Source: Girardia tigrina
Taxonomy: Eukaryota
Assembly: GCA_001938485.1 (NCBI GenBank)
Contig: MQRK01247043.1
Span: 1-50,403 of the forward strand
Reading direction: 5' to 3'
Length of the DNA stretch: 50,403 bases
The translations under genes were made by a program, and so were the position numbers. Positions 2,175 to 46,084 of the stretch are shown here, piece by piece (positions within the stretch are counted from its first letter, which is position 1; the number at the start of each line of letters is the position of its first letter). A model generated the notes under the pieces. It saw nothing but the letters and a program-made list of their open reading frames with translations, made no database searches and was not told the origin of the DNA.

Positions 2175-5100
2175 ATGAAAGCAATCAGTAATTTGAAGAA
2201 ATTTGATGGTGGGGAGGACGTCGAACATTTGATCGATAGATTCGAGTTTGCCATCGAGGTAGACGGGCTAATGGAAATAGAAGTCTCATGCGTAGTCATG
2301 TTCTTGGACGGGCTGGCATACGACTCGTGGAAGGGCTTATCGCTGGATCAGCAGAGAAATACCAAGGAAATCAAAAGTGAGTTGCGCCGAGTGTTTGGTG
2401 TGGGGAGATTTGACGCATGGATGTTGCTTGGTCAAAAGAAGATTCTCCCGGGTGACAGATTGGACGTGTCGGCGGCCGAGATCAATCAGCTGATACGGAC
2501 CGTTGTTGGGGACCAGGATCCGATCGATGCATTTTGTACAATGACATTTATTCACAGTTTACCGGATCAATTAAAGAAAGAGGTGCAACCAAGATTGGAC
2601 GTCGAATTCACGTTCAAGAGTGTGGTGAACTTGGAAAAAAGATATCACCTCATCAACATCATCAAGAAGTGATTGCGACGACCAGCAGTAAATTTCGATG
2701 TATTGGTTGTAATCGACTTGGACACGCGCAGAAGACGTGTAGGGTTAAATGCTTTAAATGTGGAGAAGTCGGCCATTTAAATGCAAACTGTTAACATGTC
2801 GGGAAACGACAGAGGGAGAAGGTCACGAGTCCAACCTCTCCCCAGTAAATGGTGTTGGACCAAATGTCACAGTAAGAGAGGGTGGTGGTATAACTACCGA
2901 CAATAGTTACGCCTATAAAAAGCCACAACGCCCCGAGGACAACTGTGTCAACAGGGCGGCCGTGAATCGCTTCGAAAATTCGCAATCGCCATTAATTTAT
3001 TCATGTTCAGCTGCTATTCCGAATTTATTGATTCGTCAAGCGCTAATCGACGGGGAAATGATGAAGGTGATGATCGACACGAGGAGTAGTGCCACTCTTA
3101 TTAGAAGAAGTTGCACAAAGTCAAGAATCGAAGGAGTTAGAAACATGAACCTGATAGCGGTCGACGGTAGTCAGGTAAATATCCTGGGTAAAGTGCATCT
3201 ACATGAGATTCTATTTGGCAGTATGAACCTGGGGCCTGTTGGAGCAACTGTGGTTGAAAGGCTACCTGCAGATGTCGACATCATAGTGGGAAACGATGTT
3301 ATTCTCAAACTTGGACTGACAATACGGGTAGACGGTGATGATGTTTGTATAAAATTTGGCAGTAATGGAGTAAAATTGGAAGCTATTACTGCAGCAACTG
3401 GAGTGAAAAGTGGAAGACATTTGCAGATAAAAGAGGATGATTTTGAAGCTCAATTTGACGGAAGGTATTGGAGCATACTATGGAGAGTTTTCGATGACCA
3501 TCCGGTTGGGAGAACCTCATGTATCAATTATGATATTCCCAATGAAGATAAAGAGCCATTTAAAGATGAAGTGAATGAGTGGGTAAGCGAAGGTGTTCTG
3601 ATAAAGGGGGGTGAAAAGCGAAACGGGAAGATTCGTAACATGATACCGTTGATTGGAGTGTGGCAAGTCAGAGGCAAAACGGCACGAATACGATTGGTAT
3701 TAGACTACAGGTTACTGAACGAACAAATTCATAGCTATCCGGGTAGCAGTTATACCAGTTGCCAGTCACGATTACGGGAGTGCAGAAAATTGGGACCCAA
3801 CTGCGCTATAATGGATTTAAAAAAGGCTTACCTAGAAGTAAGGGTGGCTCCAGATTTGTGGAAATATCAGGCGGTTATGTGGAAGGGCGAAGTGTATGTG
3901 ATGACCAGTTTAGGGTTTGGTCTATCCATTGCGCCCAGAGTCATGTCAAGAATAGTTGAAACGATTATCAAGGAAGAGCAGACGATAACTGCTTTTGAGT
4001 ATATTGATGACGAGTTCATTGCGGAAATTTCTTGTAATGCAGAGGATGTAGTAGGAATTTTTCGCCGGTTTGGGTTGGAGTCTAAACCTATAGAACGGAT
4101 TGGCTTAGACAAAGATGTCAGGGTGCTTGAACTGAATGTACAAAGCAATTTGCAGAGGAGAAGAGACCAAGAGCTCGTAACTAGGGAGCTTGAGAAAACA
4201 ACGAGGAGAGAATTACATGGAATTTTGGGCGAGTAAACAGGCAATGTATCAGTTGCAGGATAGTTCCGGGTTGCTTGTGTCTATATTCAGAGATTAACCG
4301 CAAAATACAAAATAGACTGAGATGAATTAATGCCAAAAGACATCATAGGGAAAGTTAATGAAATCTGTCAAAGGCTGAGGATGGATGGAGATCCAGTAAC
4401 AGGTAAATTGCAATAATAATGTTGTCATTTGGACAGATGCAAGTAGTATAGCAATGGACGTACTACTGTGTGAACGGTGATATCGTTGAAGACACTGCTT
4501 GGTTAATGAAAGAAGACGATACAATCCATATTAGTATGAGTGAACTGGATGCGGCCATAGGGGAAATTAATTTGGCAATAACCTGGGGCTTTCATAAGTT
4601 CAAACTGATGACGGACTCAGCAACAGTGTATGGATGGCTCATGGCAGTATTCAAGAATACACACAATCCAAGAACCCGCACATTATTTGAACATTTGGTA
4701 CGCCGAAGACTCGATATCATGAGGGTTGAAAGATCAAGAAAAACTGGAATTGGTGAAATCTCAATTGAATATGGCAGATTGTTTGACCAGGGTTCCAAAA
4801 CAATGGCTAAACAGGAAAGTGGAAGTAAATGCCATTGAAGTAAATCAGTATCCAAGTGTTGATGAGATCAAGAAAATTCATGATATCTGTCCCTTTGGAG
4901 TCGACAGGACCAGTGAACTGTTGAGGGAAAAATATGGGTCTAATGCAATAAAGTCGGATCAAGTTAAGGAAGTTATCAAGCAGTGTGTTGAGTGTTCAAA
5001 GATCTATCCAGCCCCACGAATTGAGTATCGACATGGGCAATTGTCAACTGACAAGGTATGGTACCAACTTTATAGCGATGTGACTTATTTCAACGGTGTC

Positions 5101-5210
5101 GCGTATCTGATCATAGTAGATTCAGCAACAAGATTTTTAATTTGGAGAAAGTTGCGCAGTGAATCCGCCGAGGAAATAGGTTGGCATATAGATAGCGTAT
5201 GCTCTGAATT
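2175..5210 (+). mobile_element. Decayed Ty3/Gypsy-type LTR retrotransposon internal region (gag-PR-RT-RNaseH-partial IN), truncated, no LTRs seen
   Basis: Gag-like ORF 2175-2672. Two frameshifted CCHC knuckles (CIGCNRLGHAQKTC, CFKCGEVGHLNANC). Protease MIDTRSSATLI (DTG degenerate). RT motifs RLVLDYRLLN, MDLKKAY, LGFGLSIAP, YIDD. RNase H motifs WTDAS, ELDA, TDS. Integrase zinc region (IH...CVEC) and SDVT...IVDSATRF. Domain order PR-RT-RH-IN is Gypsy-like. Multiple stops and frameshifts; homology breaks near 5210. Confidence 0.93.
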
Positions 5211-5385
5211 TTTATTGCTTTTAATCAAATTACATCATGAAACAGAGCGCAGCAAAATTACACGACGGGTAGTACATAGTCCTCATAGTGATAGACGACA
5301 TCGAATAGAATCAATAGAATAGATGTAGACTGGAGTTTTAGACTGTCATAAAGTTTCATGGAGACATAGACATCGTGTGTCATAT

Positions 5386-7179
5386 TCAGTGTGATGGCTG
5401 TGCTTGCTTCTGCGTCACAAGCTTCGCAATACGTGGCACGGTTTTAGACAACGTGCATCTGAGATCGTTCTCCACGACCAGGCGATTTCGCTGCTTCGTC
5501 TTCAAAAGCAAGAGCTGGGAAAATCCGCTTTCGCACAGGTAAGTCGATGGGAAGAGAAGGAGAATTTTCAGTGCCATCCGAGAGACCCTGGGATACGCCG
5601 TCGCCATTGCGCACCAGAATTTTGGGAGGCTCACTTGGAGAAAGAGCTCTTTCGCACTGCTCTCGTTAACCATCTCGATGAATTCTTCTTGCACCTCGTT
5701 CATGGTATCTGAGATGCAATCTGCGCTCTATGGAAAGGTATTGCGCACAATTTGGAAGTCGGCAGTGTTGACGTCTTCCAAATACTTGGACATTTCTCGA
5801 TGCAACGTCATCAAATGCTCCTGAATGGCAGACTTTATGCAGTCGTCCAGGGTCTCTTCTTTCAAACTCAACCAATTGTTCAGGGTGTCGAACATATTCA
5901 CCTTGCTCTCCGAAACTTTCGTGTGCCACAGCTCCAGCTTCATTAGAAAGGCCTTGCCTTTGTCAACGAAATCAAGGATGGTGCGCTCGCTACCGTGCAT
6001 GGACATTTTCAGGATGTTCAACCGAGATAAAGATGTCGACAAGGTATGCCAGACGCGTAATCCACGCTGCATCTTCAAACTGAGCCACGAGTTTGCTTTT
6101 TTTCTTTAATGCTAGAAATTCTTGAATCATTTGGCGAAGTGAAAACACATGCTGGATAACATTCCCACGGGAAAGCCAATGTACCTCGGAATGGTAGAGC
6201 AGCGCATATGTGCCAGAATCTATGTCCCTGCAGAGTTCTGCGAAAAGCCTTTCCTTCAGAGCACTCCCTTGATGTAGTTGACTGTCTCGACCAACCCCGC
6301 CAACACCACCGACAGCGAACTCGGAAGGGCTTTCGAAGCCACGGCATATCGGTGGATCATGCAGTGCACTGAGAGGACGTCGGCCCCTTGCTCCCGGACG
6401 AATGCCTGGAAACCAGACTTACGTCCCAACATTGCTGGAGCTCCATATGTATAGGTTCCACAAAGGTTCTTCCATTCCAGTCCTTCTCTGTCGAAGAAAG
6501 CCTTGATTTTCCCGAAGATTTCGATGCCCCTTGTGTGTGTTTCAAGAGGTTCGCAGAACAAGAACTCTTCTTTTAGGTCCCCTTCATGAACAAATCGGGT
6601 GAACACCATCAACTGCGTACATGATGCTACATCTATATACTCGTCCACCTGTATTGCAAAGAGTCCCATTGGCTAATTCTTAATCTGCGAGATGACCTGA
6701 GACTTGATGTCTTGCGACATTTCATCGATTCGGCGTTGCATGGTGTTGTTAGAGGGGGAAAGCGGCAGGAGCTTCTTGGCACTTTCTTCGCCTAACATAA
6801 TGCGAACGATATCAGCCACACATAGCAAAATTAAATTTTCCGCGATAGTGTGAGGTTTCTTTTGCTGGGCAATGCGGTACGCGACTGCATAAGACACTTC
6901 TACTGCTGCGGTCGTTTGCTGCCGACCTGTCGCATCCAGTCGTGAGTGCTTGACAGCAGCCTCCTTTCTCTGGAAGAAGGTTGCGTCCTTGTCTTTTAGC
7001 TCCGAATGACAGCCTTACAGATGCCTCTTCAGTAAGCTGGGTTTCATGGATTCTGCAGAGAGCGCTTTATAGCAAATGACGCAATGAGGCCACTCGATGC
7101 CAGCAACACTGAGCACCGTGAATCCGTATTTGATGTAGTCTTCATTGTATAGCCGTTTCTTTACATGTGAAGCTGCCAT
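5386..7179 (-). pseudogene. hAT transposase pseudogene
   Basis: ATG at 7179 (MAASHVKKRLYNEDYIKYGF...PHCVIC...MKPSLLKRHL, BED finger). Further motifs KPHTIAENLI, SNNTMQRRI, FAIQVDE, EEFLFC, GAPAMLG, HCMIHR, and the C-terminal dimerisation motif FPSTYLCESGFS...KTKQRNRL...QAQPSH. Several in-frame stops and a frameshift. Confidence 0.92.
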
Positions 7180-15133: not shown

Positions 15134-15977
15134 TATCATGAGTTTTCTTGTTGGTACCGGCTGATAGGTCGATAGAACTGTTATCAGCAGAAAGATTATT
15201 TATATTGGTCCCATTGACATTCATAACTGACGAAAACACTGATGGAAATCCCTTAGGTACTTGAAACAGATCATTTGTGAAGGAGAGACTATTTGAAGTA
15301 TTTGTAGCATTGGTATTATCGGTATTTGTTGACATAAGTGACGCACCACTCAGCATTGTATTTGGAGAGCTGCAAGAAAACCCGGAATTACTAGCCGAAA
15401 TTACGGGGCTATTTCCATTGACAGCTGCATAGGCGTTCATCATGTGTTGATGTAATGATGGCAAACCAAACTGCGTATGGAGACTGGACAAAATCGGAGA
15501 TGTTATTAATTGACCAGGATTCAGACCGTTAAACCAGTTAGCTCCATTTAATCTGGGATTTATTGAAGGTACCTTATTTGATATTGGAAAAGGTAAAGAG
15601 AGTCCAACTGAGCAAAAGTTTTCCATATTTGGAGAAAGTTTCTCATCATTCACTGTTGGTTGAGGGCTTGGATTGGCAGATTGTTGCATTATTAAATTAA
15701 AGAGACTACTACGATTCTGAAGAGAATTTGAAATATGATTAAAGGATTTCAATGGGGATTGTGATAAAAATTCAATTGACATAGAGTTATTTCCAGATGA
15801 CGTTCTAACAGCTCTTTGGTCCGTCATCAGGGGATCAACTGTCGATTCTTCATTAGAATTTCCAGAGAGGTAATGTTCTTTATAATCATTCTTCGGGGAA
15901 ATATCATCTTTGTTCTTGTCATCACTGTCATCATTATCCAAGACATTTAATGTTTTGTTAGAATAAGATGAACTTCT
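15134..15977 (-). CDS. Internal coding exon (Ser/Asn/Pro-rich low-complexity region) of a probable zinc-finger transcription factor
   Basis: 844-nt open frame between acceptor TTCTAG (15978-15979, phase 0) and donor GTAAG (15133, phase 1). Composition is transcription-factor-like and includes SIDLS. Linkage to the 45 kb exon is inferred from strand and phase only. I did not find the downstream exon. Confidence 0.8.
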
Positions 15978-20292: not shown

Positions 20293-21381
20293 TTAATGAT
20301 GAACATATGTCCATTCAGCTGCGCAGTTTATAATATTTTGAAGAATGTTCTTAAAATATCCCGCGCTATCTGGTTCCGTGATGTTATGCGTTTCAGATAA
20401 CATCAGTTCAGACAACAATAATCCATTAGTCCCCAATCTTAATTTTGATCTTGCACCATTCTTAATTTTTGAAAAAGCATTTTCAATATGGTTAAGCATA
20501 TAAGAATAAGGTGAAAGGAATTTAAATTCAAAATTAAATTCTGAAATTATTCTTTCAATTTCTTTTTTATGTATTCTGGCGTTATCCATTTTTAAACAAG
20601 CTTTTTGCATATGAAGAACATCTCTCAAATAGCAACATAGTTCAGTAATATATTCAGTAAAAATATTAGCATTGACGGTAGAGTTAGCAATTGTTTTGCA
20701 AAAGCCCATTCCGTTGATTATCATACTTGCAATTAAAGAAATTGATCTACCTCTTACTGTTGGTGTTGATACTATAGCACGAGTTCCTTGTTTCGATCTC
20801 GTATGAGATCTTTTCAAATGTAAATTAAAAGATGATTAATCGATAAATGTCTCCCCTGAAAAATCATTGTTGAAATGGTTGTTAAACCACAGCGCATATT
20901 CCTTTCTCAAAATGATTTTTTCGGTCGAATTAACTCTATCCAGCTCTCTATGGGAAAGTTTCATAGTTATTTTTAGCTCTTCTAGGCATCTATTAATGCT
21001 AGAAATTGATATCGAAATTTTCGGATCAGCTGCTTGATCAAGCATTTCTTTAATTTCTTTGACTGTAAACTGTGGATTAAATGTAACGATCTCCTCAATT
21101 TTGTTTATATTAGGCACTGTGAGAACTGTTCTTATTGAACCACCTTTTGCTTTGATGTTAAAAATATTGTGCTTGTTATATTTATTGACTATTACTCTTG
21201 CTGAATTATAGTTAATTTGAACGATCTCTGATGCTTCTAATATACTCTATCCTTGTTCACAGACGAGTCTAATTAAGCTTTGACGTTTTTCATTTGATAT
21301 TTTAGCATATGAAACTCTTGTTGGGGTTTGATTTGCAGGATTAACTGTCAAGGCAGTATTGTTCGAATTATTTGAATCCAT
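20293..21381 (-). pseudogene. Tc1/IS630-like transposase pseudogene
   Basis: One frame from ATG 21381 (MDSNNSNN...YAKISNEKRQSLIRLV) with two in-frame stops (~21248 and 20836, FID*SSFN). Catalytic motifs MDNARIH and LSPYSYMLNHIE, with 33 residues between the second D and the E. Confidence 0.88.
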
Positions 21382-28790: not shown

Positions 28791-28888
28791 ATAATGGGTG
28801 TCGAAAATCATATTAGTATTTTTAATACATAATTTAATAAAAATAATTTTAATAATAATTGCAAAAGAAAAGATAAATAATGTAAAAT

Positions 28889-29843
28889 AAAAACACGCCA
28901 TTTGTTAAATTTATTTTTTACGACAATTAATTTCGACGGTATAACCGTCATCGTCAGGTCTCAAGAAAGAAATGAATTTTAAATCTGCTTATATAGGCAA
29001 GCAGTGATTATGTCATCAATGGATTATTATGTCATCTAAACACGCTTAATAGGGTTTTCGAGAGACCCGTTTGCACATTAATCTTAGGATCTAAAGATCT
29101 GATATAAAGTGCTTCACAGGCTACCCTCTCCCAATAAAGTTTTTAGTTTTTTGTTCTGTGTCTCAATTTTGTTACGAAAAATTTTATTAGCGTGATAATT
29201 AGAGACAATATTACACCAATGAAAACACAAATCACTACTTACATTATACAATGCAGATCTAACAATAGTTAGTCGTTTCATAATTTCTATTCTTCGTTTN
29301 NNNNNNNNNNNNNNNNNNNNNNNNNNNNNNNNNNNNNNNNNNNNNNNNNNNNNNNNNNNNNNNNNNNNNNNNNNNNNNNNNNNNNNNNNNNNNNNNNNNN
29401 NNNNNNNNNNNNNNNNNNNACAGGAAGCCAAAAAATATATATCCAATTCCTTTCTTCGTAACGAACAAACTAATTTCAGATATTTCTTGAATGTAACCAG
29501 CGCATCAGGAAAATAATGATTCAAAAAATTAAAAAATAATGGCAAATTATGTTGAAAAACAAAAACACGCCATTTGTTAAATTTATTTTTTACGACAATT
29601 TCATCGGAAGATCCTAAGGAGAATGCTGGAGACAGAGAAGAAACGAAGAATAGAAATTATGAAACGACTAACTATTGTTAGATCTGCATTGTATAATGTA
29701 AGTAGTGATTTGTGTTTTCATTGGTGTAATATTGTCTCTAATTATCACGCTAATAAAATTTCTCGTAACAAAATTGAGACAGAACAAAATCTAAAAACTG
29801 TATTGGGAGAGGGTGGCCTGTGAAGCACTTTATATCAGATCCT
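28889..29843 (-). mobile_element. Non-autonomous Penelope-like retroelement with partial direct repeat and inverted 5' segment
   Basis: 40-bp direct repeat at 28889-28928 and 29561-29600. The ORF fragment has a FL..C motif (ELDIYFLASC) and ...QNKKLKTLL, resembling PLE N-termini. 29641-29843 is an inverted near-identical copy of ~29097-29299. The terminal repeat holds TATA, a hammerhead and AATAAA. An N gap lies at 29300-29419. Confidence 0.75.
28922..28960 (-). ncRNA. Minimal type I hammerhead ribozyme
   Basis: Minus strand reads GAC-CUGACGA-U-GACGG-UUAUA-CCGUC-GAAA-UUAAU-U-GUC. This gives the intact core CUGANGA/GAAA, a perfect stem II, a palindromic minimal stem III (AUUAAU), stem I GAC/GUC, and predicted cleavage after AUU (28925/28924). 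Confidence 0.8.
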
Positions 29844-30414
29844 TAACTCTATCAAATTGAGGTTCCATTACGAAAACCAAAATATTATTGGGAATTTATC
29901 GTTGTCAATCGATTAAAAAAATATTTGAAAATGTTCAATCAAAGAAACTGAAGGATTCGATAAAATCTGCGACTTAATAAACACTCGAAAATATACCGAA
30001 TAATTGATGAACATTTAATTACGTTTCGATAACATTTATCGAATTTGTCCTTCTTTAATAAATAAAGTTTGTTGTGTGAGAAAAAAAAAGATTTGAATAA
30101 ATAAAAAAATTGAATTGAAATTAATTTTACTAAAAAAATGGAATTGTAAAAAAATTGATATAATTTGTGTTATTTTGTTGAAAATTGAATGCTGTTTAGA
30201 ATTATGAAATTTATTTTAATGAATTAGTGAAGGTGAAATTTATGGCGGTTTTGTGATTAATGTGTACGTGATTAATTTGATGTTTTGTGTTTTAATCGAT
30301 AAATTTTTGTTGACAAATTTGGCAGAAATTTGATTTTGTGAAATGGTTCGAAATAATAAAAAATTGGCATGGAGATTTTTTTTGTTTAATTTGAGGTTAA
30401 ATGGTGAATTTTAT

Positions 30415-30740: not shown

Positions 30741-30959
30741 TTCGATCGACATTGATGGAGTGTGGTGGAGATGCTTTGAGATGATGGAGAATGAGTGCTT
30801 GTCGCATTTATTTTAAAAAGAGGGCGGGGCTGGAACGGAGAGCCGCAGAGATCTGTCGATCGAGATGAGCGAGGATGATGGTGGTGAGATTACGTTGTGA
30901 TTCTCCTCTCCAACCCCAGGACGCCGCCTTCGCACTGCGCCCGCTTTAACACAAACATC

Positions 30960-30962
<3 letters not shown>

Positions 30963-45185: not shown

Positions 45186-45800
45186 GGATTCCGTGTGAAG
45201 AGTGCTGTGTAGTTCTTTTGAATTGGATTCTCCGAGCGGACGAATACCGTGACGAACGTAGTGTAACTGCAATTGATGAAAGGATTGCTGGCTACAATTA
45301 CAGAAAATACATTTGTATTGTTTCTCGGCCAAGTTCTGGTCGACCGGGTCTGAATTGGTTCTCGAGCACGGTCTCGTGTCAGGCGAATGCGGCAATTGCG
45401 ACAAATCCGACACAAATCCATTCGATTTGTGACTTTTCGAATACAATTTACCGGAAAAATAAATCGAAATACAGGCGATATTGCCGTAAACGTCGGTGGG
45501 ATCGGGCGACGACGACGATTTCGTGTTGGACAGATTGTCTTGTAAGAGACCGGAATTCGACGATTCGCTGTTCGATGGATGTTTGTTGTGGATGAGAGTG
45601 ATGTGCTCGTGCATGAAGTGGCGACAAGAGGCAACTTTGTGACAAATTGCACATCGGTAAATGATATAATCGATCATCTTATCCGGATGGACTTCATCGA
45701 AATGTTCTTCGATATTGTTTAATAGGTGACTGTGAAATGTACAAAGTGGACAATGAAGAACGAGTACATCTGTCGGCATTAATTGCGGCAATAGACCCAT
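45186..45800 (-). CDS. Coding exon with three C2H2 zinc fingers (probable first coding exon)
   Basis: Fingers CPLC...HFDEVH, CAIC...HITLIH and CIFC...HYVRH. Start context aaaATGg at 45800, acceptor AG at 45815-45816 after a T-rich tract, and donor GTGAG at 45185 after exactly 205 codons (phase 0). Confidence 0.88.
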
Positions 45801-46084
45801 TTTAGAGTGAGAATCTTAACGAGAAAAACAAACAAAAATAAATGAAATATATTAAGAATTGTTTACTCACATGTTTCTTTTAATTGAATACGATTTATTA
45901 AAAACAAAGTTCAGTGGAAAATGATAATCAAAAGATGGGAAAAAACAATGATGAAAAATATAAAATAAGCACGGAAATAAATCACAGAACCATGAATGGA
46001 AAAAAAACAGTGTCCAGTAATATAACAGTTGTAATCAGATGGAAATGTTGCTCCTGTAAACAATGCATTCAGCGCTCCCGCGAT

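Follow-up and report, generated by a model that had tools for sequence, protein, structure and literature searches.

A minimal hammerhead motif in the pLTR of an internally deleted Penelope-like element from Girardia tigrina

Hammerheads of Penelope-like elements and the motif at the locus

The minimal type I hammerheads published from Penelope-like elements (PLEs) share an intact core, an extra nucleotide that separates position 9 from position 10.1, a G10.1-C11.1 pair, a short stem I, a palindromic segment 15.2-16.2 with a small insert, a location in the pLTR and occurrence mostly as lone copies of truncated elements. All of these characteristics are found again in the motif described here, which differs in host and in family. 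As monomers the published motifs are inactive and as dimers their activity is low (PMC4209133), and the role of the hammerhead in PLEs has been called unclear (PMC8557442).

In the Poseidon element PAc of Anolis carolinensis the ORF begins at stem II and the cut follows 26 bp later, an optional tail marks two starts of reverse transcription, and hammerhead activity depends on the PLE protein (PMC11167929). The present locus is alike in that the start codon stands at the start of stem II with the cut 26-27 nt on, and in that two 3' end points define a 30-40-nt tail. On the other hand, the ends fall at about +68 and +104 here, compared with an initiation loop at 111-118 in PAc, and the activity of PAc has been assayed, whereas the motif in the window (the whole 50,403-nt stretch of DNA that was analysed) is known from sequence alone (PMC11167929). 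The pLTR of Adineta vaga Pen2a resembles that of the locus in having a TATA box and an Inr-like motif about 20 bp apart, an ORF start inside the pLTR, an optional tail and an adjacent inverted copy; the available part of that account, which reports for rotifer PLEs a pLTR with TATA and Inr that also takes in the ORF start, contains neither a discussion of hammerheads nor positional statistics across families (PMC3846280). Penelope of D. virilis is TATA-less (PMC2377424). An AUG within the core, a TATA/Inr arrangement and a bimodal tail are already published for other PLEs.

Non-LTR retrozymes (PMC7229834; bioRxiv 10.64898/2026.07.22.740005) are likewise non-autonomous and PLE-derived, with a type I hammerhead and possibly a unit that runs from cut to cut, but in them every unit of a tandem array has its own ribozyme, whereas the locus in the window has kept ORF remnants. 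Identity with a non-LTR retrozyme was rejected because the locus has no tandem array and one complete motif.

The hammerhead occupies positions 28922 to 28960 of the minus strand, as read from the letters and from a descriptor scan, and its predicted cut falls after AUU, at 28925/28924. Stem I, of 3 bp, consists of GAC (28960-28958) and the closing GUC (28924-28922); between them follow the core CUGACGA (28957-28951), the extra U between 9 and 10.1 (28950), stem II of 5-6 bp (GACGG at 28949-28945, CCGUC at 28939-28935), GAAA (28934-28931), UUAA (28930-28927), and U16.1 and U17 (28926 and 28925). All core features of the PLE minimal type I hammerhead are present (CUGACGA, GAAA and AUU as NUH site), as is the G10.1-C11.1 pair with one nucleotide between 9 and 10.1 (pair probability 0.99), and the palindromic AUUAAU replaces stem III, so that positions 15.2-16.2 and loop 3 are palindromic as in other PLE minimal hammerheads. 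Every base of the layout given in the earlier note was confirmed on the minus strand; its description of an intact minimal type I hammerhead from a PLE terminal repeat, with an extra nucleotide and a palindromic stem III, is also borne out, the core and stems at 28960-28922 being intact in sequence and the end of a GIY-YIG endonuclease lying directly upstream. The relaxed descriptor gave 28960-28922 as its sole match in the window, far above chance (0.01 matches in each shuffled window), whereas the Rfam hammerhead covariance models gave zero matches to the locus at both thresholds tried, including gathering.

The ribozyme class, the start codon and the promoter

In the genome, the minimal-hammerhead pattern with a U insert has 40,353 matches, compared with 20 in the control, and 1,197 matches to the pattern have another insert; U is found in 97%, so the core reads AUG. 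These roughly 40,000 matches are high in number against the counts of up to about 9,000 that have been published, although the descriptors differ and the assembly is fragmented, and the figures are therefore not directly comparable. At least 11 multi-copy hammerhead families are present in a sample of 73. Across 19 motif clusters the pairing is 48/57 for stem I, 53/57 for stem II and 32/38 for stem III, compared with shuffle means of 24, 30 and 16, and 0 of 20,000 shuffles reach the observed values; the family clusters are related, and both this covariation and the TATA statistics given below overstate independence, yet the pairs change on both sides. Stem covariation between genomic copies, whose absence from stem II the earlier note had named as a point on which its reading could fail, is thus seen between families for all three stems. 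The palindrome also varies between families (UUAA, UAUA, CAUG, CGCG, CUAG), while there is little variation within the young family of the window copy. The paired changes argue that the ribozyme is under selection as a class. A second hammerhead family, found at L003/L026, has C at the insert and therefore no AUG, together with a CAUG palindrome.

The inserted U, placed between core A9 and G10.1, completes an AUG (28949..28951, minus strand) that is the start codon of the PLE ORF (MTVIPSKL...), and in copies that continue, this AUG opens a PLE frame of 100-162 aa. The open frames place the beginning of the PLE ORF within the catalytic core. An ATG at 28901 was rejected as ORF start, as its frame in the family stops after six codons whereas the frame of the core AUG stays open. 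AAUAAA (28910..28915, minus strand), a candidate poly(A) signal of the element located 9 nt after the cut and 6 nt after GUC, doubles as the Lys-Asn-Lys codons of the ORF start, and PLE copies run 30-70 nt past it.

The putative TATA box of the pLTR (28988..28996, minus strand) contains TATATAA at 28995-28989 with C at 28996, and lies 44 nt before the AUG. Taken alone, both motifs occur at chance level, TATATAA being seen 47 times with 40 expected in AT-rich DNA, and AATAAA 24 times with 17 expected in the AT-rich DNA of the locus. The support for them comes from positional enrichment across PLE families and not from local frequency. Of 49 sampled copies, 19 have a TATAWA that starts at -47..-37 from the AUG, and so do 9 of 23 motif groups; no other bin holds more than 2 copies. 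Of 39 copies, 14 have an AATAAA that starts 0-14 nt downstream of the cut, and later bins hold no more than 3. These bins were picked after viewing the data, and members of one family do not count as independent, but families whose stems are unrelated share the enrichment. Several families have TCAGT or TTAGT on the 5' strand of stem I, about 30 nt downstream of TATA, which favours a transcription start at about 28965-28960; transcription thus probably begins just before stem I. TCATT (28975-28971, minus strand) was rejected as start site, since it is only 22 nt from TATA, below the usual distance of about 30, and the other families point to stem I.

The earlier note had described a TATA-ribozyme-polyA cassette. 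This description holds as far as the positions of TATA and AAUAAA around such ribozymes are concerned, although not by the frequency of either motif; what it left out is that the extra U supplies the second letter of the PLE's start codon and that AAUAAA lies inside the start of the ORF. Read from its motifs, the cassette is the promoter and ORF start of a PLE.

The element copy, its origin and its possible cleavage

The ribozyme lies in the pLTR of an internally deleted PLE copy at about 29845-28884, in which the ORF-start part of the pLTR (28884..28921, minus strand) ends at AUG+68. Copies of the family have two alternative ends, at about +68 and +104 from the AUG, which leaves a 36-nt optional tail, and the window copy ends at the first of them. 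On the other side of the ribozyme are the PLE stop codon and 3' UTR, which holds the TATA box (28961..29034, minus strand), the last 34 codons of the GIY-YIG endonuclease (YWERVACEALYIRSLDPKINVQ...; 29035..29136, minus strand) and an N-terminal ORF piece (29137..29600, minus strand) that has neither TATA nor AUG and includes the masked positions 29419-29300. A TAAAAACT microhomology marks the point where this piece meets the endonuclease end, and the deletion, judged from contig C239624, is about 1.9 kb. The inverted arm (29597..29845, plus strand) repeats the N-terminal piece together with the same deletion junction, is 96% identical to the sense arm and shares AATT with it at their junction. 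An 11-nt direct repeat (GATGACATAAT twice) at 29036-29006 on the minus strand, in the PLE 3' UTR just before TATA, is common to the family.

Longer copies of the family carry the upstream VYKF..YIGE..R motif of the GIY-YIG endonuclease, and in one longer copy an RT with YVDD follows the N-terminal piece in frame (RVT_1 E 4.8e-7, above the cutoff). A single ORF with RT and then a C-terminal GIY-YIG is found in family copies, and the window copy has lost both by its deletion. Because the GIY-YIG end lies directly upstream and the RT is in the same frame of the longer copy, the pLTR is taken to be the 3' pLTR of an endonuclease-containing (EN+) PLE; a pLTR with the ORF start, an optional tail of 30-40 bp and an inverted truncated neighbour are all found, as in other EN+ PLEs. 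Assigned from domain order and motifs alone, the element is a Penelope/Poseidon-type EN+ PLE, and look-alike proteins carry HTH_animal and GIY-YIG, at a low score that makes them a lead only.

The closest neighbour copies are 96-98% identical to the window copy, and the 34-nt core has at least 1,330 exact copies in the genome, compared with 0 in the control. By these measures the PLE family is young and abundant, and this youth, rather than retention by the host, explains why the window ribozyme is intact. In many copies, at L002, L013, L032, L034, L044, L048 and L053, the endonuclease end and pLTR likewise follow an N-terminal piece, the units measuring about 660-1,100 nt, and the deletion in L002 (86% identical) has nearly the breakpoint of that in the window copy. 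Near-identical breakpoints and short units suggest recurrent non-autonomous derivatives.

We consider it highly probable that this hammerhead is the usual one found in the pLTR of Penelope/Poseidon-type PLEs, passively carried by a recent, dead and internally deleted insertion. In an intact tandem PLE the pLTR would be the 3' end of one copy and at the same time the promoter of the next. Guided by the TATA box at about -44, transcription would begin just upstream of stem I, and, by analogy with published PLEs, cleavage 27 nt beyond the A of the start codon would need a second copy that pairs through AUUAAU and/or the PLE protein. Cutting would strip the cap and the AUG from the element mRNA, or trim tandem read-through RNA. 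A lone copy in a host pre-mRNA would most likely stay uncut and be spliced out.

A further question is whether the insertion is the cDNA of a ribozyme-processed RNA, with reverse transcription having run off a self-cleaved 5' end. This is compatible with passive carriage of a standard pLTR hammerhead, but on balance we regard it as unlikely. The sense piece has its first base inside the 4-nt AATT that it shares with the inverted arm, an overlap that ends exactly at the cut position, and it comprises one unit of 672 nt reaching from one cut site to the next, together with a normal tail. Among about 23 independent copies with an ORF start, a small sample that was selected for long matches, about 7 begin within 9 nt of the cut, but another 7 begin at +26..+34 and the rest are scattered upstream, and in this sample the 5' ends do not pile up at the exact base of the cut (+1). 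Moreover, junctions at this position could be favoured simply by the palindrome and by AT-rich microhomology, and palindromes have been noted at inverted junctions (PMC3846280). For PAc, RNA-seq revealed no ends at the cut, and cleavage was dispensable in vitro (PMC11167929). The start of the 5' piece at the cut-site position hints at cleavage in vivo, and is a lead rather than evidence. It is likewise doubtful, to about the same degree, that the ribozyme acts in vivo as a switch on the element's RNA, in which case the RNA would begin at stem I and lose its cap and start codon through the cut, yet could still be reverse-transcribed once cut, leaving insertions that start at the cut site.

In the folding models, which omit the tertiary contacts of the hammerhead and their energy, a competing 7-bp helix pairs the core with the cut site with a probability of 0.83, compared with 0.013 for stem I, and the AUUAAU palindrome duplex contributes only -0.2 kcal/mol. 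AUU is among the slower cleavage triplets. The triplet and the competing inactive fold, together with low published activity and the unclear role of the hammerhead in PLEs (PMC8557442), could mean that the motif cleaves no longer and is kept as promoter or start-codon context or as a protein-binding fold. We hold this to be improbable, as covariation is seen between families in the catalytic core, the NUH triplet and all three stems, and as the motifs of PAc (PMC11167929) and Schistosoma (PMC4209133) do cleave, under assisted or dimer conditions.

As one copy among thousands of a motif kind described in 2014, the single locus matters little. More useful is the class, since tens of thousands of motifs in many families make a good data set for the question of cutting in vivo that has been left open (PMC8557442, PMC11167929), and the large copy number would let a histogram of 5' junctions address what PLE hammerheads do.

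The host gene and other elements in the window

The first coding exon of the host gene (45186..45816, minus strand) encodes C2H2 zinc fingers and ends in a phase-0 donor, and the probable next exon (15134..15977, minus strand) is Ser/Asn-rich and has a phase-0 acceptor whose frame matches that of the zinc-finger exon, which makes a 29-kb intron on the strand of the ribozyme plausible. The two exons were searched separately rather than as a joined gene model. Full-length flatworm relatives of the zinc-finger exon, with relatives in schistosomes, also carry a TALE/KN homeodomain, and the closest match to this exon is unspliced. Against the window, the full-length relatives matched only at the zinc-finger exon; no homologues of the Ser/Asn-rich exon (15977-15134) were found, a blank that says nothing of longer kin, and a homeodomain exon was not found in this contig. 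The predicted intron is plausible on two frame-compatible exons, and homology gave no confirmation of it.

The ribozyme has the orientation of the zinc-finger gene, as the earlier note had said, but its further suggestion that this copy cuts or terminates the host pre-mRNA is unsupported by the results. Such an effect on the zinc-finger/homeobox transcript, whether this copy acts on its own or has another PLE RNA as pairing partner in trans, is very improbable. On the one hand, the core is intact and on the strand of the host exons, AAUAAA is followed by a GU/U-rich run, potential partners are many genome-wide, and intronic ribozymes can affect mRNA levels elsewhere, CPEB3 being an example (PMC10919898). 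On the other hand, the copy is one of at least 1,330 with an identical core, and the relaxed descriptor found no second hammerhead motif on the same strand of the predicted intron that could pair with it in cis. To this are added the weak palindrome, the competing fold and the 112 AATAAA that the predicted intron already holds on the same strand. Published monomers are inactive (PMC4209133) or protein-dependent (PMC11167929), there is no sign of conservation beyond the youth of the family, and the intron itself is predicted only. If it were true, a transposon ribozyme would tune a developmental transcription factor; nothing here points to that.

The predicted intron also contains, at 30780-30960, a G+C-rich island with CpG beside a (TA)n run, which could be regulatory or another repeat. 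Other mobile elements in the window are a degenerate LTR retrotransposon with protease and RT (2175-5322, plus strand), the remnant of a hAT-like DNA transposon with a weak DUF4371 (5386-7179, minus strand) and a DDE_3 transposon remnant (20293-21117, minus strand).
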